Counted from the stretch's first letter, positions 9,001 through 61,056 are shown. The stretch is DNA of 64,000 nt from Macrostomum lignano (GCA_002269645.1 NIVC01000446.1:372001-436000), one strand, 5' to 3'. The notes: a model not told the origin generated them from the letters alone. Numbers and translations are program-made.

Positions 9001-12000
9001 TCACTCTTTAAGCGTTAAAAAGTAAATTGTCAGTCACTATCACAAAATTGAAATTTCACAAGCTCGATTCTCAACAAGCTCGATTCTTGACAAGCTCGAT
9101 TCTTCATAAGCTTGATTCTTCAAACAAGCTCGATTCTTGACAAGCTCGATTCTTGACAAGCTCGATTCTTGACAAGCTCGATTCTTCATAAGCTTGATTC
9201 TTCAAACAAGCTCGATTCTTGACAAGCTCGATTCTTCATAAGCTTTATTCTTCAAACAAGCTCGATTCTTGACAAGCTCGATTCTTGACAAGCTCGATTC
9301 TTCATAAGCTTGATTCTTCAAACAAGCTCGATTCTTGACAAGCTCGATTCTTCATAAGCTTTATTCTTCAAACAAGCTCGATTCTTGACAAGCTCGATTC
9401 TTGACAAGCTCGATTCTTCATAAGCTTGATTCTTCAAACAAGCTCGATTCTTGACAAGCTCGACTCTTCACAAGCTCGATTCTTCACAAGCTCGACTTTT
9501 CACAAGCTCGGAAGTTTCGCGTACTCAAAATTTTACCTGTCATATACAATCAGGATTTTGAATTTCAAAATTAGACAAGAGACTTTTCGACAATGCAAAG
9601 TTTCGAATTTTAAAAAGCGACCCTAGATGAGCCCGAAGTAAGGCTACAGGTACTGAGCAAACCAACTGCAGCCGATAATTCACTCTGGTCTGAAGAGTTA
9701 TCAATATTGCAGTCGGTTTGATTCTAACATAAAATTAAAGCTGTTAATAAACACTGCACACAATCGCAGACCACCGGTATGGTGCCAGATCCCGATCCCA
9801 GCTACGAGCTGACTCTGGACAATGTGAAGAAAATGCTAGCCATTGTGATGCGCTTCCGCTGCGGCATACCCGTTGTTGTTATGGGCGAAACTGGATGCGG
9901 CAAGACTCGCCTAGTGGAATACTTGGCCAAGCTGATGCGGCCAAGCACGCTCAGGATTGACAATATGATTGTTCTTAAAGTGCACGGCGGCATCACGGAA
10001 GATTCTATCGTTAATGTTGTTCGCAAGGCTGAGAAACTGGCCGACAGAAATTATAAAAGTATGAATAAGGCAAATCGGTCTGGCCAACTCTATACTGTTC
10101 TGTTCTTTGACGAGGTGAGTCGGTTGGCTGCTGATTGTGATAATAGTATTAATAATAATAAAAATAATAATCGCCAGATTTTAGCCTCATAAATTTCTTA
10201 CTCTAAAGAATGTTAGTTAAAAGCGAGTCTGGAACGATATTGCAGGAGCAGAGTAGCTCAACGTCTTACTGCATGCCATGACGCAATGTTTTTTCAGGCT
10301 CACTGGGTCTGGGGTGGCGGTTTTTAATGTTGCTAAATATCCAGCAACAGCGAAGCAAGCCAAATCCAGTGCATGGCAAGCAAGAGAAAAAGGGGTGGCC
10401 CCCCAGCCCTCAGCCAGGCTGATAAGCAGCTGGGCTTTCCTCTTGCCCGCTTGTGTCTGACTTTGCCCTCTCTCCTTACTGCTCTCTCATTGGCTGAGCT
10501 AGATTGGGCCTGCCCCTTACCCGGTTAAAAAAAAGACGGTCGCCAAAATGGCTTGCGACTGTTCATTCCGCGACCGTTGGTCGACCGTATGTCGACCGTT
10601 CGTCGACCGTTGCCTGTCACGCGTCGACCGTTGATTTTCGACCGTCGTTTTCGTCGACCTTTGCGACTAACAATGCGACCGTTTGGGGACCTACTCCTGC
10701 GACCGTTCCTGCGACCGTCCATCGACCGTTCCCACGACCGTCCATCGACCATTCCCGCGACCGTCCATCGACCGTTCCCACGACCGTCTATCGACCGTTC
10801 CCACGACCGTCTATCGACCGTTCCCGCGCCCGTTCCTGCGACCGTCCATCGACCATTCCTGCGACCGTCCATCGATCATTCCTGCGACCGTCCATCGACC
10901 GTTCATCGACTGTTCCTGCGACCGTTCATCGACCGTTCATCGACCGTTCCTGCGACCGTCCATCGACTGTTCATCGACCGTTCCTGCGACCGTTCATCGA
11001 CCGTTCCTGCGACCGTTCATCGACCGTTCCTGCGACCGTTCATCGACCGTTCCTGCGACCGTTCATCGACCGTTCCTGCGACCGTCCATCGACTGTTCAT
11101 CGACCGTTCCTGCGACCGTTCATCGACCGTTCCTGCGACCGTTCATCGACCGTTCCTGCGACCGTCCATCGACTGTTCATCGACCGTTCCTGCGACCGTT
11201 CCTGCGACCGTTCCTGTGACCCGTCCTGCGACCGTTCGTCCTCCTTTCATCGACCGTTCAGCGACTGTTTGGATTGCTCCGGCGACCCTTCGTCGCCCTA
11301 GATCGTATTGTGTTCTAAAAGTCTAAAAATGAAAAAAAGCGTGTAAAGACGGAAACTTTCTTTCGCTACTAATTATTACTTTCGACAAATTGAAGATTTA
11401 ACGCGTCGAAAATGTAGGAAGCGTAGACAGTGTAGACATTCTTCCCTGTTTATTTTCTACTTTTTGTTATCAATAATACCAAAAAACAAAAACATTTGCG
11501 TATATAAACGAAGCGCATAAAGGAACAAATGCCAAAGGAGTGACAGAGAAGTGGCCAGACGGAGGGGAGAGATGAAATTGTAAGATGGGTATTTTAGGTT
11601 AATGCAGTGCTAAATGCTAAACGCCCAGGCGCATGTGTCTCGCATTTTCGGAAACTGCACGTTCAAATTCGTGTGAGCAAGTAATTAATAGCTACATACT
11701 TCACGCTGCTCGCGAACATTTGTGACACTAATTATAACTACTGCTTTAACTGCTATAACTGCTACTGCTATAACTATAACTATTGCTGCTGCTATTTTAC
11801 CCACCACGGCTGCTCCGTGTTGGGCAAGTAGCATAAATTTTTAAATATCGAGCTGGTGCTAGATTTAATGTAGGTGGAGTAAGGGAAAGAAAAAACTGGT
11901 GCTCACATTGCCCAAGTAGGAAATTGCCACGAGCAAGTGTTAGTTTAAGTAGTAAAAAAATAATTCATTTTTTCAATAACTTGCCACACACTGAAGCTGC

Positions 12001-12815
12001 TGCACTTGTTGCCGTTTCGTTGTTGGTTTATTGTGCTGTTCTAGATGAATAAATACATTCGTCACATATATGGAATTCCATCATCTATGGTAGTGTCACT
12101 GAAAGGTGTGGAATAATGGCCACATCGATTAATTATTGCTTCTGGCTAAAAGTATACATACAATGAGAGAACACAAGCGTCAGGTAAAATGCACAGGTTC
12201 GTATAATGGAACAACAAATGTAATTAAGTAGTTGGGCTCCGTAGTAGGATGGGATAAAGCTAGGATAGGCTTAGAAAACGAGGCACAGTTTGCCATGAAT
12301 GAAAAATATACGAATATTTTGTTATGAAAGCAGAAAATGGCAGAAAGGCCCCTTAATTAGAGGCACAAAATGCAGAAAATACTTTTATAAGGGATATAAG
12401 GCTTCAGTAAAAGGGACTTGCAGCATATTGGAAGTTTACCTGGAGCTGATTACACACGTCTATTTTTATAGGATTAGTTTCATTTTCAGGAAGTACTTCC
12501 AATAGACAGTATGCCTTTCTTAATCCCGTAAATATAAGGTAGCATAAAAAACATATAGTTAAAATCGTGACATGGGTCAGCTGGCGTTCTGCAGAAACAA
12601 TTTTCAACGTGTCCCGATCCGATTTCGTAGCTTCCATTGCGAATAGACGACCTGATCATGTGCTTCTTTCCATACGTTGTTGGACATTAAGTCACTTGCA
12701 CTTTTTCATTCTCTAAGTAGCTAAGTAAAGAAAGGGCAAAAACGATGAGTTGGTGAAGCCATCGTGGGGGGGGGCTTCTCAAGGCGGATTTTTCTGCAAC
12801 TGTTTCCACCTGGCT

Positions 12816-12914
<99 letters not shown>

Positions 12915-12955
12915 GACAGAGAGAGAGACAGAGAGGGAGAGAGAGAGATCCAGAG

Positions 12956-13020
<65 letters not shown>

Positions 13021-16000
13021 TAGATAGAGAGAGATCTGTAGAGGGATAGAGGCAGTTCTCCCTCCATCTGGATCTCTCTTTAATGTAGCCAGACTCCGTG
13101 ACATACGGAGGGATCTAGAGTGACAGACGGAAAAGAACATGGACGGTTAATTTATTACGAAACGACTGTGGTAACGTATTCCTTGGGTATATTAAAAGGG
13201 TCGACCTCTACAAACGAGCTCATTACCCTCGTTAGCCTTTTAACCCTCGAGGGTTGTTACTTTTCCACCCATGGTATGTATAACCACGATCAGTTTCTAT
13301 GATGCGACGAAGACGAGGGCCCCATAGGCCTTCCCAGTAGAAACTAAGCCGTCCCCTAGGCGGCTTTGCCGCCTTCGCCAGCACCTCCGACGGTGGCTTC
13401 TGCGCTGACGCTGGCCGCCCGCTCGGCGGCGTTGCCGCCTTCGCTGGCCGCCCCCTCGGCAGTGTTGCCGCCTTCGCTGGCCGCCCCCTCGGCAGCGTTG
13501 CCGCCTTCGCTGGCCGCCACCTCGTCAGCGTTGCCTCCCGAGGATGCTTCACTGACATCGTCGCCGTCGTCGCAGGCGTCGACGCCTGCTTCAGCAGCTG
13601 TGCCATCCGAGGGCTCCGTGGCGGTGGCCGCTTCCCCACGGGAAGTCGCGGCCTGGATGTAGTATGGATTTTGTGAGAAAGCAGTGACACCAGTTATATA
13701 CCGTTTGCTTAATGACATCCGGCAGATGAATTGTAGTCATTGAGCTAAAATACAATTATTCACGTGCCACTCTCTACGGACATTTATGTAGTGTAACTGT
13801 AAACATTCCAGGGCGCTCCGATCGCATATTGACTCACCTTCTTCCGCGAGCGCAGATTAGACTCGGCGACACGCTTGTACGCCAAGGCGTACATCGGAGG
13901 GCGGATGACAACTCCGTGGTTTGAGAGGAAGCTGCAGATGGCCTTCTTCTTCCGCTCGTCCACCGCCGGCTTCCCCAAGCCCTTTGCCGTCTTGCCGGTG
14001 TACGACCTCCTCCGTAGTTCCCGCGGCGTGAAGACGGCCCTGTATGTCTCACGCAGCGCAGCATCGGCCATGCGCTCCACATTAGGCCCTTCTGCACGCT
14101 TTGCACACTTGTACCCGTCCACAGCGGCCATCATGCGCCGATAGGCCAAGTGCGCGACGGTCACACCAGGGTAGGCACGGCTGATGGAGACGCGTTGCTC
14201 GACTACTGGCACGGGCTCCGCGGCTTGGACCTCACTGCGGGCAGGCGGGGTATCGTGGGTCGTGGTCCTGCACGACGTGGCTGTCGTGGCCGACGACGCG
14301 TTGCGGTTCGTCAATGCAGGGACGGTGGAATAGTCGACATGTACGACTCCCGCCATGTCCCACGATACAGGTGCCGTACAAGTATCGTCCCGCTGTAGGG
14401 CGGCCTGCAGGGTTGTAACCGCAGTTTGGCAGCCTGTCTGCAGTTTGGAGCAGTAGGCCATGATGACTGCGGCCTGGTCCGTGGCGTCCTGCGCCGACGC
14501 GTGCCCCTTCGTCGCGGCCTCCTTTGCAGACTCATACGCCTTGCGGTACTCCGCTGCCTCCAACTTTGCAGCTGCCAGCTGGTCCTGCAGGGAGTCCCGA
14601 GCCCGCCGCAGCTCGTTCCGCTCGGCGTCCTGCAGTGCCTCCTGGCTCTGCGCAGCGGCACGTAGGGTCGACAGTTCCTGTGTGTATCGTTCGCACTGCC
14701 TGCATCCCGAGCGAGGCACATGCACTGCGGCCTGCTGGGGGAGGATGGCGAGGCAGGCAGTGAGGCCGGCCTGCGCTGCGGCTTTCGTCGCATGGGGGCC
14801 TCGTACAAGGCGGACGCGATACGCCTTACCGCCCCTTGCACACTTCATGTGCACAATGTCATCCTCCTTGTGTATTGGAGGCTCGCTGGTCGCGCCCTCC
14901 GGTACAATTGCAGCCTCGCTGTAGACACCGATTTTCCCGCCGTCCGCGATGCCAAACTCTACAATCCACCACCGAGGCTTCTCAGGTGGAGTCGTCGCCG
15001 GACGAGCGGCCTTCTTTGCCTGCACAGCGGCCGGCTCGTGCAATGCTCCGCGAGGTCGACGGCCGGCATTTCTCTTTCGAGTCGTGGAGCTCTCGTCCGT
15101 AGACATTGCGGCTGTAGTTCTGCAAAATGAGGGGAGTGTTCCCATTCAGCCTCCCTCTAGATGGAAGCTCTAGCGGATCTGGAGCTTGATCTCCATAATG
15201 TGCCACACATCTATGCACAGGAAACTGTTGATATCGTACTATAGTGTGGGTCCACTTAATGGGCTTATTTCCAAAAAAGACTTCTACGTACCTCATTCAT
15301 CAATCTGCAGTAGCAACAGTTATATTTTACATAGAGGGGAGAGAGGTGAGAGAGACCGGGAGAGAGAGGTGGAAGAAAAATAAACAGGAATAAAGCTGAG
15401 ACGGGAAGTAGACAGGCAGAGAATCTAGCTTGTCTATTCAAAGACTGCGTTTCTTTGCGTCATCAGGGGTACGCCTGATGTCTTCCCTAGTCTGGGTTCG
15501 ACCCTGAATGCAAGTTGCTAAGGAGAAGGACACAGATAGTACATTTGGAAATAAAGCGATTCTGCCTACCCCTATGAAATGTGCAATCAAAGCATTGTGT
15601 CCGGCCTGTACCGGTACACCTACCAGTGCTTTGCATTTATATACGTGTGTGATGCTATATATGGTGGTACCTATATATATATCGGTATATATATACCATG
15701 TGATTCACGATCGTGGATCACATTTGGGGCTGCAGAATTTCGTGTGAATTTCTCCCCTGCTGTACATGCAACAGGCTTTGCGGCAATGGGATAAGTATAT
15801 ATAGTAGACTAACGATGAAACGCTGTGTTCGTTATATAATTCGTTATATTTGTTCGTTATATTTGAAGTATTACTTACAGGTAGATGTAACAACTGGCTC
15901 GAAAATCACAACATATATATGTCTCGCCTGTGTCTGCATTTTCATCTGCTGGAACATCCGTGGGGCCTCCCGGAAGCCCTTTCCTTCCATTCCGTGCTTC

Positions 16001-19000
16001 CTACGCTTATTTCCTACGCCTATCCTACTTCTGCTATATGGTAGAAAATATGTGTATAGAATTCTACGTTTCGAAACGTACTATATATGTGGTACACTGA
16101 TGCTGCGCATGTTCCTGCAGATGAAAATTGCAGACACAGGTGAACAACACAAAAGATGGGATAGTAATTAAGGTGACACGCAAAAATGTGGGTATACAGA
16201 CAGACAAATATTAAGGTTTGAATTACTACTTACAGATAGACGTGAAAAACGAGCGAAAAGCGCAACGTAAAGCACGCAAAAAAGGTAAAAAGCACGCAAT
16301 GGAGGGACAACGCTTCAGCTTCAACCCATAGTCCTCAGTAGGACGATAAAACTGATTGAGGATGTAAGGCGAACTTGGCAGTTATCCAAAAAATATATCT
16401 TGGTAAAGAACTGTGGCTTGAAACATGTGATGAAAATGTATGAAAAATGACGTTGTAAGTGTAATTTACGAAATATTTGTCACGCTCCTTTGAAATGCAT
16501 AGTACTGTTCCACCGAAAATACGTGCCACGACTTACAGAGGTGTACCGTCACAAAAAATGCTACGGTAGACTCACGTCCTACAAGTACTGGCATGACGGG
16601 GTGTAAAGACAAATAACAGACATAGAGAGGCATACAAAGTGTCATAAGCAAGGAGAAATGAGGTGCATAAAAACAGCTGTAAAATGGTGCACCGTGCCCT
16701 TGTAAACCCTTGTGCAATTTAACGAATGAAATGTGCCACGGGAACTTGGGTAAAAAAATTTGGGCAAAAAATTGTGGCATTGGAACACACCGGGCCACAT
16801 GACAGGAAGGGAAGGGGCAGTAAATAGCCCCAAACGCATATGCATATGTGCGCACATATGGCAAGGCCTGGCGCGGCATACCGTATAGCTATGCATAGAT
16901 TGCTGGAATATTGTTGTAAATGCGTAATTATAAATACGTTGACGAGGTGTGGGAAATGCATTGAACACTGTGTGCAGCGTACATGGGAAGCAGGGAATTC
17001 CCTTCGAAACTAGTTTCGAAAGTAGACGCTATCTTGCTTTGGCATGACACAGCTAAGCACAGTTTGCCAAAAGGAAATTAAAGTAGCTGAAATTCCAGCA
17101 GCTGCGGCCGGCGTGTTTCACGACAGAGACAACTTCTTAGTCCGGCCCATATAGTGCGTCACAACCGCTGACGAAATGCAGCAGTGAATGTGACGAAAAG
17201 ATTTACGTGTCCCCAAGAAATTTCGAGCCTGCATAAGCTTAAGCTGTCTTGTATGTCGGCCTTTTATTCGACGGCAACCCAGCCCGACAATGTCCATGAT
17301 TACTATGCACGCACAGTGAGCATGGACAGTCATGCATGTACATGTACATGACATGTCAATCAGTTATGTCACTCAGTCGCTCAGGTGAGCTAGTCATTCA
17401 GCATGGACACTGACTGACTCATTGATGACGAGTCGAGCTCGACTGCTGATCGGCGTGCCGCCATGGAAGCGGCTCCGGGATGGCGACGTGCAGGCGGAAC
17501 GGCCGATCCTGGTTGGCCCCCTCCGTGGCGGCCCGCCACAGATCGACGTTGGTAACGGCCTCCTCCTCCCACGGCCTCAGCCACGACAGCCAGGGACAGC
17601 TATTCGCCAGCTGTGTCAGGACGCATACGGTCAGCCGGACGTCCTGCAGGGAGAGCCGGCGAAGGCCCCTGCCGACGGCACTGGTACACAGGACGACCAC
17701 GCCGTCGTCGGAGAGGTTGGGGCACTGGGCGATGAACAGCTCGTGCAAGTCCGGAAGGCCCAGCTGGACAGGCCGCTCGCCACTTATAGCGGACCAGCCC
17801 TGCGTGGTGACCAGCCGGCAGTCGTCCAGGTGCAGGGTGTGCAGGCGAGGCAGCTGCGTCAGTAGACATTCCAGCAGCGCGTCTGTGCAGCAGATGTCGG
17901 ACAGAGACACGTGGCTGAGTTCTGTGGAATGGGGAATTCCAATTTCCAGTGTTCAGCGACTGGTCCCCCCAGCGCTATGGTTCGTTTACGGTACGGTAAG
18001 GCTCGTACTGACGGCCACGAATGAAACTCACCCCTACAGCCAGTGACTGCATGCACGAAATCGTCACCCGTACAGCGAAGAAACTGGCCGGGCGCGACGG
18101 TCAGGAGCTGCAGGGCCGACGGCATTGGCTGTCGGGCGTGGCCCGAAGCATGGTCGTGGAGGCGGGCTGGCGAGTCGAAATCCGCCAGGATGATGAGCTC
18201 CACCAGCTGCGGCTGACGGGCGGCCAGCAGGTACCCCTCAGCCCGGAGTCGGCGACACCGGAGCAGCGTCAAGCTCCGCAACCCCGGCCACGCCGCGAGA
18301 AGGAGCCGGAGGCCGCGGTCCGTCAGTTGGACGCAGTTCTCGAGGACGCATTTGCGCAGCTGGCTGCCGTTGCGGCCGACGGACCCTGACAGCTGCGCAG
18401 CGAGCTCGTCGCAAATGGTCGTGCCGCCGATGGTCAGCTCCTGCAGGCTGGGCAGACCGGCAGTGACAACCAGCAGTCCTGTGATATTGGTGAATTGTTG
18501 GAGTGAGTAGGAGAGGCATTTAGTATTTTGCCCATAAGTACGAGTGGCATTTTGTAGGAGTCGCATTATGCGCAGGAGAAATAAAATCGCGTACAAATTG
18601 ATCTCCTACACGATGGAACACATACCAGCACTGGCGCCACAGTGATCGACTCTGACAAGGCCGCCCAAACAGCTGCGACATCTGTCCGACTGCAGGGCGT
18701 CGTCGACGGCCGAAAAGCCCTCGAAAGCCAGCCGCACCGACGAAAGCCGGCACAGCAGTCGGCGGAACAGCGGTTCGCAAGTGCAGAGATCCGCCAGGGC
18801 TCCGACATCGTCAAGCTCAATGTGAGCGAGGTGTGGACAGCCGTCTATAAGGGTCCTCAGCGCCTCGGCCGTCAGCATGCCTCGGCAGTCCAGGAGGCGG
18901 AGATGACGCAGACGGGGGCAGCCACGGCCGGCGGCGACCAGCGGATTGACCGCTGACTGGGTGCAGTCAATCGCCGTCAGCAGCAGGCCCCGGAGGTTGG

Positions 19001-22000
19001 GGCAGTCCCTCAGCAGGAGCGACAACTGCTCCATCGTCGCGTCTGTGGGTTGCGAAAGGAAGCCGAATTCGACTTCCCGCACCGAGGCCGCCAGCCTCTC
19101 CGTAACGCGAGTGAGAACGTCCGAGTGCGGGTCGGCCTCGAGTACTGCTGGGTCGAGTCGCAGTCGTGGCCACAGTAGGGGTTGCATTGCCAACTCGTGC
19201 CAGCGACGGCTCACCCGTGCGCACCGCAGGAGGCTCTGTAAATCCAGCGAAGCGAAAATCCGCGTAATCAACTCCGCTGGCAGCGCGTCCATGGTGTAGG
19301 GCTGCAATGTTCGTAGGGATATTCGTTCATTACCGACGAGCGACAAATTTGAGAGGCACACTTTGAAGCAGTGGCGTGTCTAGGGCGATACGGGGATATA
19401 TCCCCCCCATTATAAGAAAATTTTGTATAGCACACATTCTCCGCTAATCAGTAAATAATTTCACCTTTTATAAATTAGACAAATAAATTAAATTGTACAG
19501 GATTCATACTGGTGCCGTTCTGGTACAGCAAGTGGATAATTTCAGCCTAATCATGAGTTTAACTAATTAATCTGGCCCTTTGGTACCACTAATCTATATT
19601 ATCCTTTCTTTCCCGAAATAAACTTTCCAAAAATAGTTATTGTCGTGTTGTGTCGAAAATACAAAAAATCATATACAGTATTTATGTACCCTAATTTTAA
19701 TATATTTCTATATAGATACAAAGCCTAAAACTGTAGAGAAACATTTTACTATGAAGAAACACAAATTTATTACTTTTGAGCAGCATGCTAAGTAACGTAA
19801 GCAGCGAATATACTATCAAGATGAATATTGTCGACCTCCTTTTGGTCTTGTGGCTTTCGAAGTATAAGTACATTTGTACAAAATACAATTCCAGTTACTA
19901 AGCTATTTTGCATGAACTAAAATGAATAGTATTTTAAGCATATTCTAAAAAGCCTATATGCGCTCTAATTACTGTAAGGAACGATCTGCTCAGAATATGG
20001 GATTAGCTCATTCCTAAAACAACACAATTGGAAATAAAAGCATATATAACGATATTTACCAGATACAACAAAACAACTTTAAGCTGCGATAGAAGAATCC
20101 GCTCGGTCTAATATTTCTGCGTTTAATAAATGCCTGCAAAAAAAGCTATTTGCAGTGCAAGTAAACAAGTTCAAATTCTATTTACTATACAGAACATGAT
20201 AAATCCTACGAGTAAATTAAAGCTTAACATAATTTTCATGTCAAAATAGCATAAGTCTAATTTTTACTACACTAGTATATTTTTTAATTGCTGTCTTGCT
20301 GCATAGTAAGATAGTGAGAAGTCATTATGGCCTAATGAGGTTAGTAGTGAACACCAGAGCATGCAAATAAAAATAAAAAAAGAATGCAGATGGAGAAGTC
20401 GTTAGAGAAAAAGGACAGTTTCTTCTCTGAGTATAATAATAAATGTGTAAATGATTGCATTCAGCTAAAGCATCAGGCATAAAAAGAGTTAATAAATAAT
20501 GATGACCATGCAAAAGAGAAGCATACACACACATGCGCGCGCGCAGTTGAGCCACACTGCGGCAATACACCGTGAAGACAGAAGGCAGGTTAACACATTT
20601 TCTTCTAATAAAGAGGGACGAAAACAAGGCAGACAAAAATATTAGTAGAATAAAGGTAGATCCCACGTCAAGAAAAAGGGAAAATAACACAGATCATACA
20701 AACTCTGACACAAAGGATTGGATTTATCCTTCCCTTTTCCTTTTTGCTTTCGTGATGCTGCTATATAGCTATAGTAAAATTGAAAGCATATACATATTGT
20801 TAGGTTTACATTCTAGAAATACATACAGGCAAAAACAGAATGATCTAAAACATCCACAAACATATGTATGTCTATTTTAAATAAGACTTTATTTATAAGA
20901 CGGCTATAGACCGGCTATGGCGGAGTGAGACCTCTAAGTAAAAAATGCCTCAAACAGCATGTCGTTAACTGACTGAGTCCCGGCTGAGTCCCGACTGGGA
21001 CTGCAACTCAGGGGAAATATGCTCTCCTACGCCCCTTTAGCTCCCAGCTGTCCGAAACGGCACGCTAATATTCCTTGTGTATACCGTAATTACTAAGCCG
21101 CTACCGTACCTATATGGTAGCAACATTGGTAGCAGTGTGCCACCGGCTTACAAGGAAAACAATAGCGCAGCAAAAGTAAAATAGCGCAGGTAAAATTTGG
21201 CACCTAAGAACTGTTTTCACCATATATTCACGCACTTTTCCACAAAGGTGGTACAATGCAGCCAAAGATTGTACTCAGAAAGTCGGCAGATCGAACTAGC
21301 CATCTTACAAACAGACCATCAAAGCCTGCTCACTATAAAATAAAAGTTATTCACAAGGGACAATCTATCACTTCACAATTATGACACTACATCACTCCTA
21401 GTTAGCACCCAGCGCGTGGCATTATATACAGATACGTCCATTTACGCCTCTTGGTCACTTGATATTTGCTGTATGGACATGGAATTGGAAATGTGTAATG
21501 ATCAAAAGCCGCTCAAAATCACGATTAACGATTTACGATTAACGATTTAACGGTCATGACGTTCTAATCGCGGTGGAAAATAAACACGGCCAATTTACAT
21601 GGGGGGGACCGGCAGACCGTTCTTACGGCTCCTTACACGAAGTAGAACGGAATGACAAGCAAATAAATGTAAACTACAGGTGCACACATTCCGGTGTCTG
21701 TGTTTAGCTGGACCTGCACTTTCCATCAGTTTTTTTGTGCGTTAAGTGGACCACCCCCAGGGCGAAAGGAATTAGGAGATTATTGAATGAACCTGCCGCA
21801 TCCTGTATGCTTATATTATGTGACTCTCATAGGCTTTAGTCAATAAAAAAATTTCATGACGTCATTTGCCCTCGATTGCGTGGACCACGCTTATTATATA
21901 ACTAGTCAGTTGTAGCTGTGTACTGTGCACAATGTGCACAATGTCTAATGGGATTTAGATACATCGATTATTGTACTTGCGCCTCTGTTACCATCACGTG

Positions 22001-25000
22001 ATTAATATTACAGATTCCAGGCCATTCATTGGGGTCCCAATAAACTACAATGAAAGCAGCCAGAAAGGCAAAAACGGGTAATGTACGTAAGGAGTCCAGG
22101 TGAACGGAGAGGTCTAGCTAGACCGGAAAAATCTGATGAAAAGTGCACGTAAACACACACACCAACACGAGGGACTCGTACAGTTCCAAAGGAAGGTTTG
22201 CACAGGTGGCACAGTCAATTGGCAGACGCAGGATGTCAAGCCGAAAAGGAAAATTGCACATGCGGAAGGAACGCGACAGCCGAGTTGGAGACGCAGCAGC
22301 TGGCCACCACCGTGCCCGCCAGTGGGTCCAGGTCGAAATAATACTGCGACACGCGGACGAACGGGTCGTGAACGAGGCGCCGCACGTGAGCTAGGGCGCA
22401 CCCACCCTGCAGCCGGTTACCGCTGAACTGGTACAGTGGGTTATCCCGTGGCTCAACGTGTTTCTCCGTTAGCAATGGGCGCATACGAAGTGTGACGCGC
22501 TCGCGGTCGTCCAAGTTGATGGTCTCGATGCGAGCAAAGTGGAACTGCAGCAGAGGCTCGGACCGCGTGGCGTAGGCTATGAAGCATGACGCGAACTTGG
22601 CAAATCGAAGCTGAGGTCGGAACACCTCGAACGTCATTCCGCCGGGCAGCGTTACCCGGGTGTAGGCGCGGCGGGTGCGCGCCCGTCGGTAAAGACGCGC
22701 GCCTTCTGCGGTGACAACGGCCGGACGACCTACTGCTCTGCTCTTGGAGAACGGCGACTCCACACCCAGCTCCGCCGCCAGATGACGATGAGCAACCTAA
22801 ATGTGAGCACGAGATAGGGATAGGGGGATGGCCAGCTCCACTCCCTCGTCGGCAACGTAGAATGCCCCACCCCCACCAGTCAGACTGTGAGACATATTGC
22901 AGACAATATATAGGATTAAGCATCATTTGGCCTCACGTGCCGCGTGATCAGCCGTACGGCCTGCGCTGCCACGTGTCGCGAGCCGTGAATACGCGCCCGA
23001 AGCCTCGCATGGTGCGATTCGAAGAGGCCGGCCGACAGACGGTGAATGGGACCGAACAGGTGTGCGAAGGAAACAAAATGTTGACACACTTGATGGGCGT
23101 TGTAGGTCATAGAGCTCTCCGTGTACAGGGCCCGCAGATTGACGTAAAAATGCTGCAGTGACGCCTGCGCCCTCAGCACCTGCATCAGCGGCCCGCCGTC
23201 CAGTGACAGCCAGAAGATGCTGGCAGAGAGCAGCATGAAGTGCTGATAATACCTGGCCAGGTATGGATATGGGGTATGACGGGTACTATGTGTACTGTGT
23301 GTAACTAAATAGCTACGGACAGGGTACTAACAATTTACTTACTGAATTGTTAGTAAATTGTTCGTACCTTGTCCAGTAGCAACTTAGTAACAGATGGCAC
23401 GTGTGTGCGACACTTGACAGTACTGTCAAGTGTCGCACACACTTGTCATCTGTCCTGGAATGCATGTATCCATGGTACATAAAGTCCGGCGCGCAGCTTT
23501 AAAATCTAGATAAATTTACCTACGCTCCAGAAGGGACTCGAGCACGATGGGCCCGTAGACGAAAAGCCATGCCTCCAGTTCGTGACCACGCCAGTGACCC
23601 AACTCGCGAAGTGTTCGCGGCGCTCGCTGGTGACTCACAGGAACGTGGATACCAGACATGATTGCGTCCGCCTCCGCGATACGGCGGGATAGGTCGGGCG
23701 CCGGGCAGTTCCTGCATTAAATGCGAGGCAGCTCGTTGTTGGTTACTTTGCAACATAGCACGTATATGCATACCCACGTCAGGCCAAAAGGGTGAATCAT
23801 GCCATTTAGGTCATATTCCTATGAAATGCTACGACGGTTACATTATCAGTATGGAAACGCTCAAATACGTAGGAGCAGGCACTTACTTCGACGGTTTATT
23901 TTTAGGCGTAAGAAACAGCTGCCTGAGAAGCCACCCCACGAGACCGGCGCACAGCTGGTGCAGATAGCACGGTGGACAGGACATGATGTAATCGAAGCCA
24001 TGCAGCTCGATTAGAGGCGAGACAGCCATGACGCCCAGGTTGTCGTCCTTGCCGGGCGGCTTGGTGCGGTGCAGCATGATGGTGTCCGCGAGTTCCCGCA
24101 CCTCCGGTCGCTGTACGCCAGCGTCCACTGCCAGCTTCCTTGCAGCTGCCGACACCATCTCGGGATAGTAGCGGGAGTTTACTGCTGGTAGAGGGACCGT
24201 CATGGTGTAGCAGCTGCCGCACCCATGCTTGCCGTTGTGCTGCCGAAGTCCCGTAGCCTCAGCACGCTGAGGAGCGTCAAAGATGAACAGTAGGGGATGC
24301 AGACGAAGCCTACCGGCACGTGTCCCATCGGGCCCGCCGCCCCTGCTGTATGCCACGCCTGCGTTGCGAAGTTCGTTCAGAGCCGGGACTAACCGTGGCA
24401 GAAAGGCGGTGGAGCGGACTTTATGTTTGCAGGCCAACAAGCCGCAGATGACCATAAAGCGGCTCTTCATCTCTTCGGCAAGTTCGACGATGCTGAGGTA
24501 CACTGGAAACAGTTGCATGACGGTATTGCCAAACACAGGAAATCCGTCGACGTTCACGGCGTAAGTGAGGTCGGAGCGCTCTGCAAGGTGAATCGTCCGC
24601 TTGAAAGCCGTGTAGCAGGCACTACTTCCCAAGTGGAGACGGTCTAGGCAGATGGGCTGATCTACAGGGTAGACAACATGGCGCAGCATCCCACCAACCT
24701 CAATGTGGAGTCGGAGCTGCGCCGCGAAGTCGAATAGCCAGAACTTGGCGACGTTAGTGTCACCTAACGGTGCGTGGCACTGTGGACAAGTATTTGCACA
24801 GGGTTCATCAAGCTGGCTGCCACAATGCATACAAAACGAAGACGCATGGCTCCGCGCAAGGGACGAGCATTTCAAGAACTGGCTCAGATGGTACACGCTT
24901 GTAGGGATGTCTGCACCCTCCGGTAGTACAGCCTGTGTGTAGCACAGCAGGTTGCGAACTCCGCGTTGCGACAGGTTCTCCACGTCACTGAACATGTGCA

Positions 25001-28000
25001 GTAGCGTAGCGATTGTAGCGTAGGACTGTCGGGCTCCCTGGTAGGCGGTTCTGTTGCACAGTACACGCAACTGCGCCTCAGCATCGAGGCCTTCCGCGGC
25101 AGCCTCATCGTCGACTGCACCGTCGTCGCTACTCGGTGCCAGTTCCGCGTCACTATCAGCGCTGGACGCGCTTGCCTCGGCGTCGGAGGCCTCGGCGTCG
25201 GAGGCCTCGGCGTCGCTGGCTGCGTCTGAGGCCTCGGCGTCGCTGGCTGCGTCTGAGGCCTCGACGTCGCTGGCTGCGTCGGAGGCCTCGGCGTCGCTGG
25301 CTGCGTCGGAAGCCTTGGCGTCGCTGGCCTCGGCGTCGGAGGCCTCGGCGTCGCTGGCCTCGGCGTCGGAGGCCTCGGCGTCGGAGGCCTCGGCGTCGCT
25401 GGCCTCGGCGTCGGAGGCCTCGGCGTCGCTGGCTGCGTCTGAGGCCTCGGCGTCGCTGGCTGCGTCTGAGGCCTCGGCGTCGCTGGCTGCGTCTGAGGCC
25501 TCGGCGTCGCTGGCCGCGTCGGAAGCCTCGGCGTCGCTGGCCTCGGCGTCGGAGGCCTCGGCGTCGCTGGCCGCGGCGTCGGAGGCCTCGGCGTCGCTGG
25601 CCTCGGCGTCGGAGGCCTCGGCGTCGCTGCTGGCTGCGTCGGCTACATTCCCCGGACGACACGCATCAGTGAGTAGGCGCAGTTTTTTGGACATGCGGTA
25701 GCGCTGCTGCCGTAACCGTGCTGCAAACCGTTTTCTGTCATTGCGCACGGCATTTCCGTTTTCTGAGGGCTGTGACATTTCCCAAATGGCTGGAAGGGAA
25801 ATTAGGTAGACGACTGGAGATCTTCATTTGTAGCTTGAACCAGTCAGCCGTTGAACGACTCAAGCCAGTCAGACTGCCCTCTATGTTTTTCTATCACTGA
25901 CCATCTGTACATGCATATTACCAATGTAAACAGCCAGTTGACTACCAAGTCAAGGTTAGTCCCTTATATATTCTAATGGTTATACAGCTCTCTGTACGAA
26001 CGACTTATTAGATGGTAGCTGCGATCTGGAATAATTTGTTCAGACAGGGAGCTATAGATGGATCCACAGATCAAGCCTCACAACGCTAAAACGCTTCATA
26101 CTAAACAGTCAAAATACACTGAAAACCCCAAATTCAAAATCCTGCAAAAACCCTGATGACAAATTTTCAGTACCATTCCTATTCACCGTGCCAACATTCA
26201 GTTCACGGAAGCCTTATTTGTATCATTTATTTTACAGAGTTCCAGTTTTCCATTGTCACAAACAGTTTAGCTGCTTCTGTCACAAAAGTTTCGCTAGCAT
26301 ATATCTTACGTAGAAACTTTCCTATACCGTCCTATACAGTCTTCCACGGAACAGAAATTTAACAATTTCAATATATCTATGACAGGGATTCAGGGAAACC
26401 TTTACATTATCAACTTTTTTACTATTAATCTTAATAGTTGGCAAGAACTGCAACACCGATCCTGAGGCCTTCAGTACATGTCACTTATACTAAATTAGTA
26501 AATACTTATATGCTGCTGGTCCCTTTGCCTACAAATACTGTCTACAAATCTCTACAAATGCTGTATAAAAGACCTTGTCTGTCGACTACACACTACTCAA
26601 CTCACTCACTGACAGCCGACTGTGCTTCCGCATTTCCAGCTTCGTTAGGTACTGGGTTTGCAAAGAAACGAAAGGACTTCACCATAAAACCAACTGTTTT
26701 TGGCTCACAGATGGTCACAAAAACCGTTACACAGAAAAGTTCTACAACAGTGGCAGCGGTAGAAATGGTCGAAGAACTGTACCACAAGGGGTCCAAAATG
26801 GTGTGAAAGTGTCTGAGGAGGGTGTGAAAATGGTTCGAAAAACAGCCGAGAGAGGGTCGAAAACGGTAGAAAAAACGGTCGACAAAAGCCCAAAAAACAG
26901 TCGAAGTGGAGGGATGGTGGACGGTGAAACCGTGGTGGGAAAAACGGTCGAAAGAGTGGTCGATAAAACGGTCGACGGACGGTCGACGAAACGGTCGACG
27001 GACGGTCGACAGAACAGTGGACAGAACGGTCGACAGATGGTCGCAGAGACGGTCGCCGAGATGGTCGACAAGACGGTCGACAGAACGGTCGGCAAGCCGG
27101 TCGGCAAAACGGTCGACAAAACGGTCGACAGACGGTCGACAGACGGTCGACAGACGGTCGCAGAGACGGTCGCAGACAAGGTCGCAGACAAGGTCGCAGA
27201 GATGGTCGAAGTAACGGTCGCAGATACGGTCGCAGAGACGGTCGCAGAAGAACGGTCGCAAAAACAGTCGACGGAACAGTCGCTACCAACGGTCGCATGC
27301 CACGGTCGCAAGAATTAGTCGCACAGTCGCACACATCGACCGTGCAGAATGGTCGACTACTCGGTCGTTCACATGGTCGCATCCGGCGACCGTGCTTAAC
27401 GGGCGCTGGAATGGTCGCAATAATAGTCGACGCCGGCCATCACGGTCGCAGGACGGTCGAGGGCCCTGAAATGCGACCGTTATTTTTTTAACCGGGTTAG
27501 GCTGGGTTTCGTCCGTCTGACTGTGACCCTCTCTTCTTACTGCTCTCTCATTGGCTGAGCGAGATTGGGCCTGCTCCCTAGGCTGGGTTTGGTCCTTCTG
27601 ACTTTGACCTCTCCTTACTGCTCTCTCATTGGCTGAGCTAGATTGGGCCTGCCCCTTAGGCTGGGTTTCGTCCGTCTGACTGTGACCCTCTCTTCTTACT
27701 GCTCTCTCATTGGCTGAGCGAGATTGGGCCTGCTCCCTAGGCTGGGTTTGGTCCTTCTGACTTTGACCTCTCCTTACTGCTCTCTCATTGGCTGAGCTAG
27801 ATTGGGCCTGCCCCTTAGGCTGGGTTTCGTCCGTCTGACTGTGACCCTCTCTTCTTACTGCTCTCTCATTGGCTGAGCGAGATTGGGCCTGCTCCCTAGG
27901 CTGGGTTTGGTCCTTCTGACTTTGACCTCTCCTTACTGCTCTCTCATTGGCTAAGCTAGATTGGGCCTGCCCCCCTAGACTGAGTTTCGTCCGTTTGACT

Positions 28001-31000
28001 TTGAACTCTCCTTACTGCTCTCTCATTGGCTGAGCTAGATTGGGCCTGCCCACCCCTTGGCCGATTTTCGTCCATCTTGCGTTTGTGTGTGCACATCGAG
28101 TTGAATGCTTGATCATTCTTAACTCAAATACTCCCGAGGCCACCAACACCGAGGAAGAAGAGGAAATTTTAGCTGCCACATTAAATGAAGTGACACTGCG
28201 CAGACAAACTACTGAAAAAAGAGTAGACTTGTAAACAGCTTGGCTATGAACCATATCAATAAATAGCATAAAAAATAACACTTTTGCACAACAATACTCC
28301 AGGTAAACACAACCAGCGCAGTCGGCCTAATCAAAGAGATCATGTGCGACGGTCGGGTTCACGGCCGTCCCATTAACTTCACTAGCGGCCTGCGCTGTGT
28401 GGCTGCCTGCAACCCGTACAGGCAGCACTCTGAGGCCATGATCCAGCGTCTGGAGAACAGCGGCCTGGGCTATTGGGTGCGCAAAGATGCGACTCAGGAT
28501 CGATTCGGTGCGATCCCCATGCGCCACCTTGTCTATCGAGTCAAACCCCTGCCGCTTAGCCTTATCAATGTGCTGTGGGATTTCGGCAACCTGTCTGAGG
28601 ATGCTGAGGCCAAGTATATTCAGCGCATGATTGAGGCTCGCGTTCACGAGCTGGTGCAGCCGCACTGCGGACACTTGGCCGAGCTGGTTCGCTTTTCCCA
28701 GGTATATTGCATCTTTGATTATTAAACTGCTGTAATCAAGTTAATCTGGCCGAAATATAACATCTAAAATGGCATTTTGTTGTATATATTAGGTACCAAA
28801 TAGTGAATCGAAAGATTAAAACAATTAAAAAAATTGTTTAATTTAGTAGATTTCACTGAATGGAATTCCAGTGAGTGGGATTCCAGTGAGTGGGATTTCA
28901 CTGAGTGGGATTCCAGTGAGTGGGATTCCAGTGAGTGGGATTTCACTGAGTGGGATTCCAGTGAGTGGGATTCCAGTGAGTGGGATTCCAGTGAGTGGGA
29001 TTTCACTGAGTGGGATTCCAGTGAGTGGGATTCCAGTGAGTGGGATTTTACTGAGTGGGATTCCAGTGAGTGGGATTTCACTGAGTGGGATTCCAGTGAG
29101 TAGGATTTCACTGAGTGGGATTCCAGTGAGTGGGATTCCAGTAAGTGGGATTCCAGTGAGTGGGATTTCACTGAGTGGGATTCCAGTGAGTGGGATTCCA
29201 GTGAGTGGGATTCCAGTGAGTGGGATTCCAGTGAGTGGATTTCACTGAGTGGGATTCCAGTGAGTGGGATTTCACTGAGTGGGATTCCAGTGAGTGGGAT
29301 TCCAGTGAGTGGGATTCCAGTGAGTGGGATTCCAGTGAGTGGGATTTCACTGAGTGGGATTCCAGTGAGTGGGATTCCACTGAGTGGGATTTCACTGAGT
29401 GGGATTCCAGTGAGTGGGATTCCAGTGAGTGGGATTCCAGTGAGTGGATTTCACTGAGTGGGATTCCAGTGAGTGGGATTTCACTGAGTGGGATTCCAGT
29501 GAGTGGGATTCCAGTGAGTGGGATTCCAGTGAGTGGGATTTCACTGAGTGGGATTTCACTGAGTGGGATTCCAGTGAGTGGGATTCCAGTGAGTGGGATT
29601 TCACTGAGTGGGATTCCAGTGAGTGGGATTCCAGTGAGTGGGATTCCAGTGAGTGGGATTCCAGTGAGTGGGATTTCACTGAGTGGGATTCCAGTGAGTG
29701 GGATTTCACTGAGTGGGATTCCAGTGAGTGGGATTCCAGTGAGTGGGATTTCACTGAGTGGGATTCCAGTGAGTGGGATTTCACTGAGTGGGATTCCAGT
29801 GAGTGGGATTTCACTGAGTGGGATTCCAGTGAGTGGGATTTCACTGAGTGGAATTCCGTGGGATTCCAGTGAGTGGGATTCCAGTGAGTGGGATTTCACT
29901 GAGTGGGATTCCAGTGAGTGGGATTTCACTGAGTGGGATTCCAGTGAGTGGGATTCCAGTGAGTGGGATTTCACTGAGTGGGATTCCAGTGAGTGGGATT
30001 TCACTGAGTGGGATTCCAGTGAGTGGGATTTCACTGAGTGGGATTCCAGTGAGTGGGATTCCAGTGAGTGGGATTTCACTGAGTGGGATTCCAGTGAGTG
30101 GGATTTCACTGAGTGGAATTCCGTGGGATTCCAGTGAGTGGGATTCCAGTGAGTGGGATTTCACTGAGTGGGATTCCAGTGAGTGGGATTCCAGTGAGTG
30201 GGATTCCAGTGAGTGGGATTCCAGTGAGTGGGATTCCAGTGAGTGGGATTTTACTGAGTGGGATTCCAGTGAGTGGGATTCCAGTGAGTGGGATTTCATT
30301 AAATGGGATTCCAGTGAGTGGGATTTCATTAAATGGGATTCCAAGAAGTGGGATTTCTCACTGTATGAGATTCCAAGGAGTGGGATTTCTCACAATATGA
30401 GATTCCAAGGAGTGGGATTTCACTGCCTAGGTGTAGGATTTCACTGTTTGCATAGTTTTTGTCTTGCTAGATATTCGCTCGTAATTTAACACATTTATTT
30501 CAACTCCTCAAGGCCTTCATGCGTCGAATCAACGATGAGACCAAGTTTGTGTCGCTGCGAGAAGTGGAAAAAGTCATCCAAGTGGTGAACTGGCTCATCG
30601 ATTTTCAACAGATTATTGTTAAAAACATTGTGAATGAGCCCGATGATCATTTAGCGGTGCCGGCTATCACAGACTACACACGGGCTGCACTGCTGACTGC
30701 TGCCATCTGCTATTATAGCCGTCTGTCATACGAGAATAAGCAGATTTACCTGACTGAACTGGCCGCCAGATTGTGCGACACAGCTGGCCGGCCCCTCACT
30801 GATCGTGATCTCTACCGGGAGATCTACAGGTGAACCGGCTTGTTACCGACTTGGATAGCATTTAAACATTTTTCAGACTATTAGAGACATTACGATTAAA
30901 ATCTTTATTCGTCTACTTTTCTCAGTAGTCTCAATTGAATCTTTTAATCGTTTCTTAAGAAACCGGTCAGCGAAAACTAAAGAGTCTTAGACAACAAAGA

Positions 31001-60762: not shown

Positions 60763-61056
60763 CATGGATGAATAATATAACTGGATCGCCAGAAGCTCGA
60801 TTTTTTTGGTCCTAGCCATAGACAAGCACCAGCATCACAAGACGCTCAGAATGCCGTACTTTCACACAGACAAATAGCCGCTGCAGAAGCTGCAAACCTT
60901 TATTTATAAGTATTCTATTTTATGTCCAAGCACATGCTCGCAATATATGCAGGGTGAAAGTACGGCATTCTGAGCTTCTTGTGATGCTGGTGCTTGTCTA
61001 TGGCTAGGACCAAAAAAATCGAGCTTCTGGCGATCCAGTTATATTATTCATCCATG
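60763..61056. mobile_element. 294-bp MITE with 103-bp TIRs and 8-bp TSD, P-element-like termini
   Basis: TIRs 60763-60865 and 60954-61056 differ at 1 of 103 positions; GCAACCAC is duplicated at 60755-60762 and 61057-61064; the terminus is CATGGATGAATAATATAAC. Confidence 0.9.

Follow-up and report, generated by a model that had tools for sequence, protein, structure and literature searches.

Why does a complete F-box/LRR gene reside within a transposon? We analyzed a 64,000-nt stretch of flatworm DNA (hereafter, the window) in which a gene at 17419–19292 had been predicted, from the sequence, to be carried by a transposon and to act as an effector, with passive, Pack-type capture of a host gene as the alternative. 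Our results support a reading, to which we assign a probability of about 60%, in which an autonomous cut-and-paste DNA transposon has conserved this gene as accessory (cargo) and retained it as an SCF adaptor. The element itself appears to have kept the gene, because it is found at the corresponding place in a distant relative that occurs in several copies in Macrostomum lignano.

The transposon and its genes

The F-box/LRR gene of the window is transposon-borne. The window shows TIRs, a TSD and an empty site (Table 1), matching the description of a Class II TIR cut-and-paste element. The TIRs are perfect over the first 14 nt (CCCGGTTAAAAAAA) and match at 22 of the first 24 positions; the termini read 5'-CCCGG...CCGGG-3' in the window and begin CCCGA... 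in the M. lignano relative. A reconstructed 26-mer empty site occurs intact at 27645 and 27804 in the adjacent minisatellite, and the presence of these intact units in the flanking repeat confirms the insertion. One copy of the element from the window's own genome entered the comparisons. The ~17-kb transposon is inserted, in antisense orientation, into an intron of the flatworm's RNF213 gene; the two RNF213 exons that flank the insertion align jointly, with no break, to RNF213 residues 2021–2239 (E = 7e-63).

Table 1. Positions of the transposon, its genes and the flanking host exons in the window
Feature	Position	Strand	Remarks
Host RNF213 exon, just upstream of the insertion	9779–10192	+	AAA Walker A and B motifs; mechanical ORF range, true exon shorter
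Left TSD copy, TTA	10517–10519	.	3 bp, read at the element's left edge
Whole autonomous DNA transposon	10520–27496	- (gene strand)	16,977 bp; TIRs at both ends, TTA TSD outside
TIR, element's 3' end relative to the genes	10520–10543	+	CCCGGTTAAAAAAAAGACGGTCGC
Subterminal tandem repeats	10560–11290	+	11–23-nt periods, CGACCGT(T/C) core; direct reading; repeat family D14
Third element gene	13784–15145	-	453-aa ORF, coiled-coil middle; predicted as BEN-like
AATAAA polyadenylation signal	17263–17268	-	150 nt past the F-box/LRR stop codon
F-box/LRR exon 3	17419–17921	-	aa 372–538 and stop codon, including the C-terminal tail
F-box/LRR exon 2	18032–18478	-	aa 223–371; GT-AG gene model
F-box/LRR exon 1	18626–19292	-	aa 1–222; F-box aa 2–46 at 19289–19155
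Transposase exon 3	22236–22796	-	ends ...FLPHVQFSFSA, then stop codon
Transposase exon 2	22937–23252	-	H(4)H motif HQVCQH and FGP..SAGLFES; 53% identity to the M. lignano copy
Transposase exon 1	23887–25778	-	acidic ASDAE-repeat N-terminus, zinc ribbon, VNVDGFPVF, LFIFDAPQR, C(2)C motif
Subterminal tandem repeats	26900–27460	-	CGACCGT core as at the other end, but in inverted orientation; direct reading
TIR, element's 5' end, upstream of the transposase	27473–27496	-	CCCGGTTAAAAAAATAACGGTCGC
Right TSD copy, TTA	27497–27499	.	3 bp, read at the element's right edge
Host RNF213 exon, next one downstream of the insertion	28342–28725	+	mechanical ORF range

Three genes lie on the minus strand within the TIRs and encode a transposase, the F-box/LRR protein and a third protein, so that the F-box/LRR gene sits, as predicted, between the transposase (25778–22236) and the third ORF (15145–13784) of a single element. 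The three exons, canonical splice sites and ACCATGG-type start that had been proposed all hold at 17419–19292. The CDS of 1617 nt encodes 538 aa and contains no internal stops, all splice sites are GT-AG (donors GTATGT and GTGAGT, both acceptors CACAG), and the start codon context is ACACCATGG.

The gene is of the complete F-box/LRR type, in agreement with the original prediction of an F-box and many Cys-type LRRs. Pfam F-box-like (PF12937) matches aa 2–46 with E = 1.1e-13 over model positions 2–46 of 47, and Pfam F-box (PF00646, E = 3e-9) and LRR_At5g56370 (E = 5.5e-7) match as well; about 16 Cys-type LRRs follow the F-box. The hallmarks of FBXL proteins, an N-terminal three-helix F-box of ~45 aa and a C-terminal Cys-containing LRR solenoid, are thus both present. 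An AF2 model (mean pLDDT 86.7, pTM 0.83) predicts three F-box helices (6–13, 18–24 and 29–35) and a solenoid of 17 β strands in which strand and helix alternate about 16–17 times. In a sequence search of the PDB, FBXL2 ranks first (E = 5.5e-19, with the alignment covering the LRRs), followed by SKP2 and FBXL17. Foldseek places SKP1-bound F-box/LRR receptors at the top of its PDB matches (6o60_C, E = 5.8e-17), the best being FBXL2, COI1, FBXL17, TIR1, MAX2 and SKP2. These domain and structure matches are far above chance.

The transposase-like gene is intact, with three exons encoding 922 aa. A motif order VNVDGF...FIFDAPQR...GC(GS/DH)C...HQVC(Q/E)H...GLFES is conserved in the window and M. lignano lineages. 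The gene probably encodes a DDE-type transposase with CMC-like motifs, its catalytic residues being assigned by eye and not by alignment to known CMC transposases. A Pfam search at a cut-off of E = 10, which is nominal because HMMER filters drop most matches above about 0.1, reported no CACTA/KDZ family (Transposase_21, DUF4218, KDZ). PDB searches with the single transposase sequence and with a two-sequence profile returned no match, RAG1/Transib included, nor did a word-indexed search of 5.8 billion proteins.

The third gene has a homologue in the M. lignano element, where it likewise follows the F-box gene, and the two proteins share a conserved C-terminal motif, VFT.(R/E)E....S(Y/F)TG...........E.K..AI..FLS. 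Neither the transposase nor the third protein matched any Pfam or PDB profile. The third protein may at most resemble a BEN domain at the motif level; Pfam BEN matched neither the window ORF nor its C-terminus nor the M. lignano homologue, a PDB sequence search found nothing, and a single-sequence AF2 model (pLDDT 40) is too low in confidence for use. The protein may bind the subterminal repeats of the element.

A related M. lignano element and possible roles of the putative adaptor

The related M. lignano element measures 12.7–14.5 kb and is identical to the window element in gene order and strand (transposase, F-box/LRR, third gene). At least three independent insertions have both ends read, with TSDs CAG, ATC and TTA; together with the window, the TSD is 3 bp in four of four such insertions. 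The 14-bp TIR common to the M. lignano insertions, CCCGATTGAAAATC, agrees with the window TIR at 10 of 14 positions by eye. Similarity between copies ends exactly at the TIRs, and L003, L005 and L006 have unrelated flanks and 3-bp TSDs of different sequence; another copy, L007, shares its flanks with L005 and represents the same insertion. One insertion lies antisense within a Neur_chan gene. An identical protein is encoded on six M. lignano contigs, with at least three different flanks among those with both ends read, and the copies diverge by 0–0.8%. Between the window and M. lignano, the transposases share 43–54% amino acid identity over most of their length (31% in the last exon), the F-box/LRR proteins about 36%, and the third proteins 26–30%. 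The F-box/LRR gene has therefore been retained across divergent lineages.

Spliced GenBank models cover the F-box gene of the M. lignano element (P0003, P0156) and the gene downstream of it. Since M. lignano gene models derive from genome-guided RNA-seq assembly (PMC5730564), these models imply that the M. lignano counterpart is transcribed, in line with the spliced transcripts anticipated by the original prediction.

The most likely mechanism of a retained adaptor would be docking onto host SKP1-CUL1-RBX1, as suggested by the canonical F-box consensus, while the solenoid of ~16 repeats and the C-terminal tail would present a protein for ubiquitination to the benefit of the element. In favor of this reading, M. 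lignano expresses SKP1 in proliferating and germline cells (PMC9740662). Candidate substrates would be host factors that act in silencing or chromatin, in the DNA-damage response or in the cell cycle, and proteins of the element itself.

A more specific role, possible but on balance unlikely, is that of an anti-silencing effector: the SCF adaptor would degrade a PIWI/AGO, piRNA-pathway or heterochromatin factor in neoblasts or the germline and relieve silencing of the element. All support for a retained SCF adaptor applies equally here, and precedents exist in the F-box-like polerovirus P0, which targets AGO1 (PMC6593998), in many viral F-box proteins (PMC3588083), and in TET/JBP dioxygenase genes, the probable counter-silencing cargo of fungal CMCT, KDZ and hAT elements (PMC12730594). 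M. lignano silences transposons via Macpiwi1, as Zhou et al., 2015 are quoted in PMC9740662, and expresses SKP1 in its proliferating and germline cells (PMC9740662). However, no sequence feature singles out a silencing factor, or any other particular protein, as the substrate, the protein lacks similarity to P0 or VANC, and proteins of the element or DNA-repair, DNA-damage-response and cell-cycle factors are equally plausible targets; neither expression nor small-RNA data on these elements came to light. The broader proposal that an animal transposon lineage encodes an SCF substrate receptor as a counter-defence, recruiting SKP1-CUL1 in neoblasts or germ cells against a piRNA-pathway, heterochromatin or host restriction factor, is likewise unlikely, if slightly more so. 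Were it true, an arms race would follow in which the large and rapidly evolving F-box/LRR family of Macrostomum is either the host side or a by-product that became domesticated.

Self-regulation or conditioning of the host is a more doubtful role still. The adaptor would ubiquitinate the transposase or the third protein and thereby limit or time transposition, or it would act on a factor of the DNA-damage response or cell cycle and make breaks left by excision tolerable. Self-limitation is common among DNA transposons, and in both lineages the F-box gene is co-linear with the transposase and third genes and shares their strand, as expected of cooperating proteins. In M. lignano, polycistronic precursors that trans-splicing resolves make up about 7% of transcripts (PMC5730564), which makes co-expression of the element's genes feasible.

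Origin and retention of the F-box/LRR gene

Macrostomum carries a large family of similar host F-box/LRR genes arranged in tandem arrays. In a neighbor-joining tree of 13 sequences, the two element-borne F-box proteins are sisters (bootstrap 86), and the pair nests inside a Macrostomum-specific F-box/LRR family. The original prediction had posed an element-specific clade against recent capture, and the tree favors the former. Most likely, the gene entered the element once, as genomic DNA with introns, from this family, and would afterwards have been maintained by selection acting on the element; transfer may have run from host to element or from element to host, because the position of the pair within the host family is poorly supported (26–65%). 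In the window and M. lignano genes the positions of the last intron coincide, and those of the other intron differ by no more than six alignment columns. Both element-borne proteins end in a tail, N(V/I)(D/E)(L/M)W..A....N..R...L...(I/L)PE, that is missing from the two non-element relatives aligned (P0001 and P0161). The ten top-ranked matches of an exhaustive search for which the source was looked up were all M. lignano paralogues. Orthology to a named FBXL (FBXL2/FBXL20) was rejected, as these match only with E of about 1e-15 and about 25% identity.

The gene also bears marks of coding constraint, for which the original prediction had proposed dN/dS as a measure. Between the two lineages pN (0.46) is lower than pS (0.63), with a dN/dS of about 0.5 that is rough because dS is saturated. 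Two nearly identical M. lignano copies, L005 and L003, differ by one substitution in 4976 coding nt vs 28 in 6045 non-coding nt (Fisher p = 1.3e-6), and their F-box CDS alone has none in 1707 nt (p = 0.002), a contrast to which gene conversion, or non-coding DNA that is rich in repeats and prone to mutation, could have contributed.

These data bear on passive, Pack-type cargo, in which a host F-box/LRR gene was caught by chance, confers no benefit and looks intact only since the copies are young. Capture of host gene fragments is frequent in CACTA-type and Mutator-type elements, the Macrostomum tandem arrays offer possible donors, and the M. lignano copies are indeed very young. Yet the gene is complete and has kept its introns in an autonomous element with an intact transposase; its position is unchanged between two lineages that share only about 45% identity in their transposases; and the similarity of the element-borne F-box genes stopped short of intron sequence in the one alignment inspected. 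Nor was a near-identical parental gene, the expected mark of such capture, seen in M. lignano, where the nearest annotated paralogue among the 13 sequences of the tree reaches no more than 31% identity to the protein of the element. The same-order M. lignano element, the sister F-box pair and the depletion of substitutions in coding DNA together argue against Pack-type capture, which we regard as improbable, and favor an accessory SCF adaptor that has been retained. Although the M. lignano DV1 assembly is highly redundant (180–312 Mb duplicated; PMC5730564) and L005 and L007 are one insertion, duplication of an ordinary host gene cluster, whether segmental or of the whole genome, is refuted by the TIR-exact limits of similarity, the unrelated flanks and differing TSDs of L003, L005 and L006, and the empty-site equivalent in the window.

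Comparison with known systems

Animal FBXL proteins that serve as SCF receptors (FBXL2/FBXL20, SKP2, FBXL17) resemble the window protein in combining a canonical F-box at the N-terminus with a solenoid of Cys-containing LRRs after it. Unlike them, the window protein, about 25% identical, belongs to a Macrostomum-specific expansion and is longer (about 16 LRRs), and its gene lies inside a transposon and encodes an element-specific C-terminal tail.

Other autonomous TIR elements also keep a non-transposase gene that probably manipulates the host. VANDAL elements of Arabidopsis carry VANC, and MULE and CACTA elements carry a ULP1 protease. TET/JBP dioxygenase genes are carried by fungal CMCT, KDZ, hAT and Harbinger elements (PMC12730594). 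Here, in contrast, the cargo is a predicted ubiquitin-ligase adaptor and the host is an animal, a flatworm; our literature search found no report of an F-box cargo gene in a DNA transposon. Pack-MULE and Pack-CACTA elements differ in being non-autonomous and in carrying fragments of host genes with a closely similar parental gene, whereas the window element is autonomous and its gene complete.

Among transposon groups, CMC (CACTA/EnSpm-Mirage-Chapaev) elements resemble the window element in their 3-bp TSDs, long subterminal repeat arrays beside the TIRs, large size and more than one gene; the 3-bp TSDs of the four insertions fall within the 2–4 bp of CMC (3 bp in CACTA). The transposase may also follow the motif order D...D...C(2)C...H(4)H...E described for the group (PMC12730594), with residues placed by eye. 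The window element differs in having termini CCC...GGG rather than the CA...TG of CACTA, and its transposase has no Pfam CACTA/KDZ or PDB RAG1/Transib match. The transposon may represent a new or very divergent lineage.

F-box genes have been physically associated with DNA-transposon sequence before, in host F-box genes into which TE domains were recruited (Caenorhabditis F-box::Mariner-HTH and zebrafish F-box::KDZ CxC7; PMC12062965). The direction there is the opposite: TE domains were joined to a host polypeptide, whereas the F-box gene described here is complete and separate, and it is the mobile element that carries it. The closest functional analogy is with the F-box proteins of parasites (polerovirus P0, nanovirus Clink, poxvirus Ank/PRANC, baculovirus LEF-7 and Agrobacterium VirF), genetic parasites that encode their own F-box adaptors and redirect the host SCF (PMC3588083, PMC6593998). 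Those proteins are viral or bacterial, often with a minimal F-box-like motif and other substrate domains, and have no sequence relationship to the window protein; here, a full eukaryotic FBXL-type gene with introns is carried by a cut-and-paste transposon.

The F-box/LRR gene and the element that carries it

The original prediction of a three-exon gene for an F-box/LRR protein at 17419–19292 is borne out by gene model, Pfam and fold. The introns are GT-AG (donors GTATGT and GTGAGT; acceptor CACAG in both), the start codon lies in the context ACACCATGG, and an AATAAA is located 150 nt beyond the stop codon. The 1617-nt CDS encodes 538 aa with no internal stops. Pfam reports a full-length F-box (PF12937, E = 1.1e-13, aa 2–46; PF00646, E = 3e-9) as well as LRRs, and the entire F-box consensus, LP.EL...IF..L....L..C..VS..W..L......LW, is kept. 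The closest solved structures by sequence are FBXL2 (E = 5.5e-19), followed by SKP2 and FBXL17. An AlphaFold2 model computed from an alignment of 50 sequences is confident (mean pLDDT 86.7, pTM 0.83) and comprises three F-box helices followed by ~16–17 strand-helix LRR units. Foldseek comparison with the PDB ranks SKP1-bound F-box/LRR receptors first, led by FBXL2 (6o60_C, E = 5.8e-17), then COI1, FBXL17, TIR1, MAX2/D3, and SKP2.

Exons and open reading frames of the window element
Feature	Position	Strand	Remark
F-box/LRR exon 1	19292–18626	minus	
F-box/LRR exon 2	18478–18032	minus	
F-box/LRR exon 3	17921–17419	minus	
Transposase, three exons	25778–23887, 23252–22937, 22796–22236	minus	upstream of F-box gene; spliced model
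Third ORF, 453 aa	15145–13784	minus	downstream of F-box gene

The transposase is intact (922 aa). Inverted termini were found by reading the ends: CCCGGTTAAAAAAAAGACGGTCGC starts at 10520 and a near-perfect inverted copy ends at 27496, which delimits an element of 16,977 bp. The first 14 nt of the two termini are identical and 22 of 24 match; inside each, subterminal tandem repeats with a CGACCGT core extend for hundreds of bases in inverted orientation. TTA flanks both termini, and the insertion target is a minisatellite. Both flanks joined through one TTA form the 26-mer GGGCCTGCCCCTTAGGCTGGGTTTCG, which is present intact at 27645 and 27804 in adjacent repeat units; as these units represent an internal empty site, the 3-bp target-site duplication (TSD) is proven. 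One copy of the window element was seen in its genome.

The element lies antisense within an intron of an RNF213 orthologue, whose exons at 9779–10192 and 28342–28725 give an unbroken alignment to RNF213 residues 2021–2239 (E = 7e-63). This RNF213/mysterin gene occupies nearly all of the window (1 to ~55650, plus strand); its joined exons match RNF213 with E = 1e-187 and include a RING-like exon at 44206–44685. Its introns are crowded with minisatellites (periods 8–54 nt), and short inverted-repeat or MITE-like families occur in the introns and 3' of the gene (60762–61057; 33688–35931 vs 48976–49624; 1757–2091 vs 48124–48472), one example having 104-nt arms of 99% identity with 88 nt between them. 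An intact single-exon ORF of 725 aa at 56343–58520 (plus strand), with weak matches to a hAT-dimerisation domain (E = 0.015) and to zinc fingers, is bracketed by the perfect 13-nt inverted repeat CAGTGTTGCCACT at 55986–55998 and 59132–59144. A hAT-like element and a domesticated gene are both conceivable, and the repeats showed no matching 8-bp TSD. Exact-sequence look-up of this ORF and of the third ORF of the element returned no protein record. A further ORF at 61981–62877 (plus strand) resembles a seven-transmembrane receptor of the aminergic type and contains a DRY-like motif, MDRY.

Acceptor-like AG dinucleotides (ttgcag, ttccag) precede the F-box and transposase ATGs by 9–11 nt (19301–19312 and 25790–25800, minus strand). 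Since M. lignano resolves polycistronic precursors by SL trans-splicing (PMC5730564), expression of all three same-strand genes from a single precursor is conceivable, albeit speculative.

A related transposon in M. lignano and the affinities of its genes

The F-box/LRR protein was searched exhaustively with HMMER against 1.84 billion representative proteins; of 863 matches, only three had E < 1e-30. Sources were traced for ten top-ranked matches, all of which proved to be Macrostomum lignano F-box proteins (34–43% identical), and the next tier consists of generic FBXL2/FBXL20 proteins (E ~1e-15). One M. lignano F-box protein, P0003 (full-length form P0156, 568 aa), is identically encoded on six contigs. 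In tblastn searches with the window proteins, its loci contain the three genes of the window element with gene order and strand unchanged. Identity between the two elements is 43–54% over most of the transposase and 31% in its final exon, and 35–37% for the F-box protein; the third gene encodes 605–653 aa in M. lignano, with a first exon 26–30% identical to the window ORF.

Similarity among the M. lignano copies, which measure 12.7–14.5 kb, ends exactly at a 14-bp TIR, CCCGATTGAAAATC. By eye it matches the window TIR at 10 of 14 positions; the exact M. lignano TIR is absent from the window. Three insertions have unrelated flanks and TSDs of CAG (L005), ATC (L003), and TTA (L006), and one copy lies antisense within a ligand-gated channel gene. 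TIR-bounded similarity, unrelated flanks and differing TSDs thus identify these units as bona fide mobile elements, with the F-box gene inside in both lineages. Segmental duplication as the origin of the copies is ruled out by the exact stop at the TIRs and the different TSDs.

For five other M. lignano F-box proteins (P0002, P0004, P0009, P0161, and P0163), neither the transposase nor the third gene has a homologue within 10 kb; several are encoded in tandem F-box arrays, and they resemble an ordinary host gene family. Arrays of F-box/LRR paralogues outside elements pack as many as four genes into 12 kb (locus L008, 10001–22469; also L009 and L010). These arrays are a lineage-specific expansion of the F-box/LRR family that includes the element gene. 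P0001 (A0A1I8F2G2), the one M. lignano protein nearest to the window protein, is annotated as a fusion of a linker-histone H1/H5 domain with F-box/LRR; nothing in the window corresponds to its linker-histone exon.

No CACTA or KDZ transposase family was reported by Pfam for the window transposase at a cut-off of E = 10, where only weak zinc-ribbon or coiled-coil noise appeared. No PDB chain, RAG1 and Transib included, was matched by the single sequence or a two-sequence profile, and a word-indexed search of 5.8 billion proteins gave no match. Both lineages keep, in order, the motifs VN(V/I)D(G/A)F, HPLLF..DAPQR, GC..C, SCPPCYLHQ, MTYNAHQVC.H, and FGP...SAGLFES. Transposases of the CMC/CMCT clade have the layout D...D...C(2)C...H(3-4)H...E (PMC12730594). 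With catalytic residues assigned by eye, the motif order resembles this layout, and a 3-bp TSD, extended subterminal repeats and several genes per element also agree with the clade. Termini of the form CCC...GGG and the absence of a profile match disagree with it, and we describe the element as CMC-like without assigning membership. The finding also bears on how to classify this transposase, which current profiles fail to match. A long tandem array of acidic ASDAE units forms the transposase N-terminus (25100–25650, minus strand; aa ~45–215) and resembles an acidic tail; the corresponding part of the M. lignano transposase is a different stretch, rich in Gly/Ala/Asp.

The third gene is conserved along with the element; its product has a coiled coil in the middle and a motif conserved at the C-terminus. 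Its earlier label, BEN-like, gained no confirmation: Pfam gave no BEN match at a cut-off of E = 10, only weak zinc-ribbon or coiled-coil noise, and sequence and profile searches of the PDB matched nothing. A single-sequence structure model has a pLDDT of 40, too low to use. By analogy with TnpA of En/Spm, the subterminal repeats, different in the window and M. lignano elements, may be the binding site of the third protein.

Probable acquisition and retention of the F-box gene

In a neighbor-joining tree (13 sequences, 377 trimmed columns, 200 bootstraps) the window and M. lignano element proteins are sisters with 86% support, which favors an element-specific clade over recent capture. The pair is nested in a Macrostomum-specific family, apart from FBXL2-type outgroups. 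P0001 joins it weakly (65%). Deeper nodes have only 26–65% support, so the tree does not fix the direction of transfer. Window intron 2 occupies the position of an intron in the F-box gene of the M. lignano element, and intron 1 lies at most six alignment columns from a second intron of that gene. A C-terminal tail is common to both element-borne proteins and missing from P0001 and P0161, two of the non-element relatives aligned with them.

Between lineages, the F-box gene has pN = 0.46 and pS = 0.63 (Nei-Gojobori), a dN/dS of ~0.5 that is probably lower in truth because dS is saturated; the transposase gives 0.15–0.43 and the third gene 0.46. Divergence among the M. lignano copies is 0–0.8%, hence they are very young. 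The proposed dN/dS among them was not computable (zero coding changes); the contrast of coding with non-coding sequence, used instead, revealed coding depletion. L005 and L003 differ by substitution at 1 of 4976 coding and 28 of 6045 non-coding nt (Fisher p = 1.3e-6), with all three genes avoided; for the F-box CDS alone the count is 0 of 1707 nt (p = 0.002). A first BLAST of L003 against L005 gave 99.9% identity for the F-box segment and 97% for its neighbours (L003-L006 element, ~9558–12660 in locus coordinates). In a global alignment this gap came mostly from repeat indels; the coding/non-coding substitution contrast persisted.

For the M. lignano assembly, the gene models in GenBank derive from genome-guided RNA-seq assembly (PMC5730564). 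They include a four-exon model for the element F-box gene and a model for the downstream gene, which indicates that both are transcribed and spliced. The clade, the shared introns and tail, the coding depletion and the transcribed models disfavor recent, passive Pack-type capture, the alternative raised with the original prediction. The sequence comparisons favor a single old acquisition of the F-box gene, since maintained by selection.

Proposed role and comparison with known systems

On the most likely reading, the transposon supplies an SCF substrate receptor of its own. The LRR solenoid and C-terminal tail would hold a substrate, and host SKP1-CUL1-RBX1 would ubiquitinate the substrate so presented. 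Proliferating and germline cells of M. lignano express SKP1, which is required for spermatogenesis (PMC9740662). According to Zhou et al. 2015, as cited there, transposons in this species are silenced in a PIWI-dependent manner. An anti-silencing role of the element F-box protein, as first envisaged, is unlikely but the foremost of the specific alternatives; self-regulation of the element, or control of DNA damage or the cell cycle, is less probable still. That the gene is cargo without function is very improbable.

The role of a transposon's ubiquitin-ligase adaptor is directly testable in M. lignano, which offers RNAi, transgenesis, PIWI-based transposon defence and a characterised SKP1. Two divergent lineages of the element keep a complete FBXL-type gene at an equivalent position; the M. 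lignano lineage is young, multi-copy and transcribed. Full-text literature, with Repbase and most subscription journals outside reach, reported no cut-and-paste transposon with a conserved complete F-box/LRR gene, and no mention of the gene id Mlig022939 was found there. Among plant DNA transposons, VANC is an accessory, probable counter-silencing gene; to our knowledge, examples from animal transposons are scarce. Fungal DNA transposons carry TET/JBP as accessory, probable counter-silencing genes (PMC12730594). Caenorhabditis and zebrafish have host F-box genes with captured TE domains (PMC12062965), and the present element bears on how lineage-specific F-box families expand, whether spread by elements or captured by hosts. 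Viruses and bacteria are well known to deploy F-box proteins of their own as parasites (PMC3588083, PMC6593998); SCF hijack by such means, not familiar for eukaryotic cut-and-paste transposons as far as we found, is an established strategy of viruses and intracellular bacteria.
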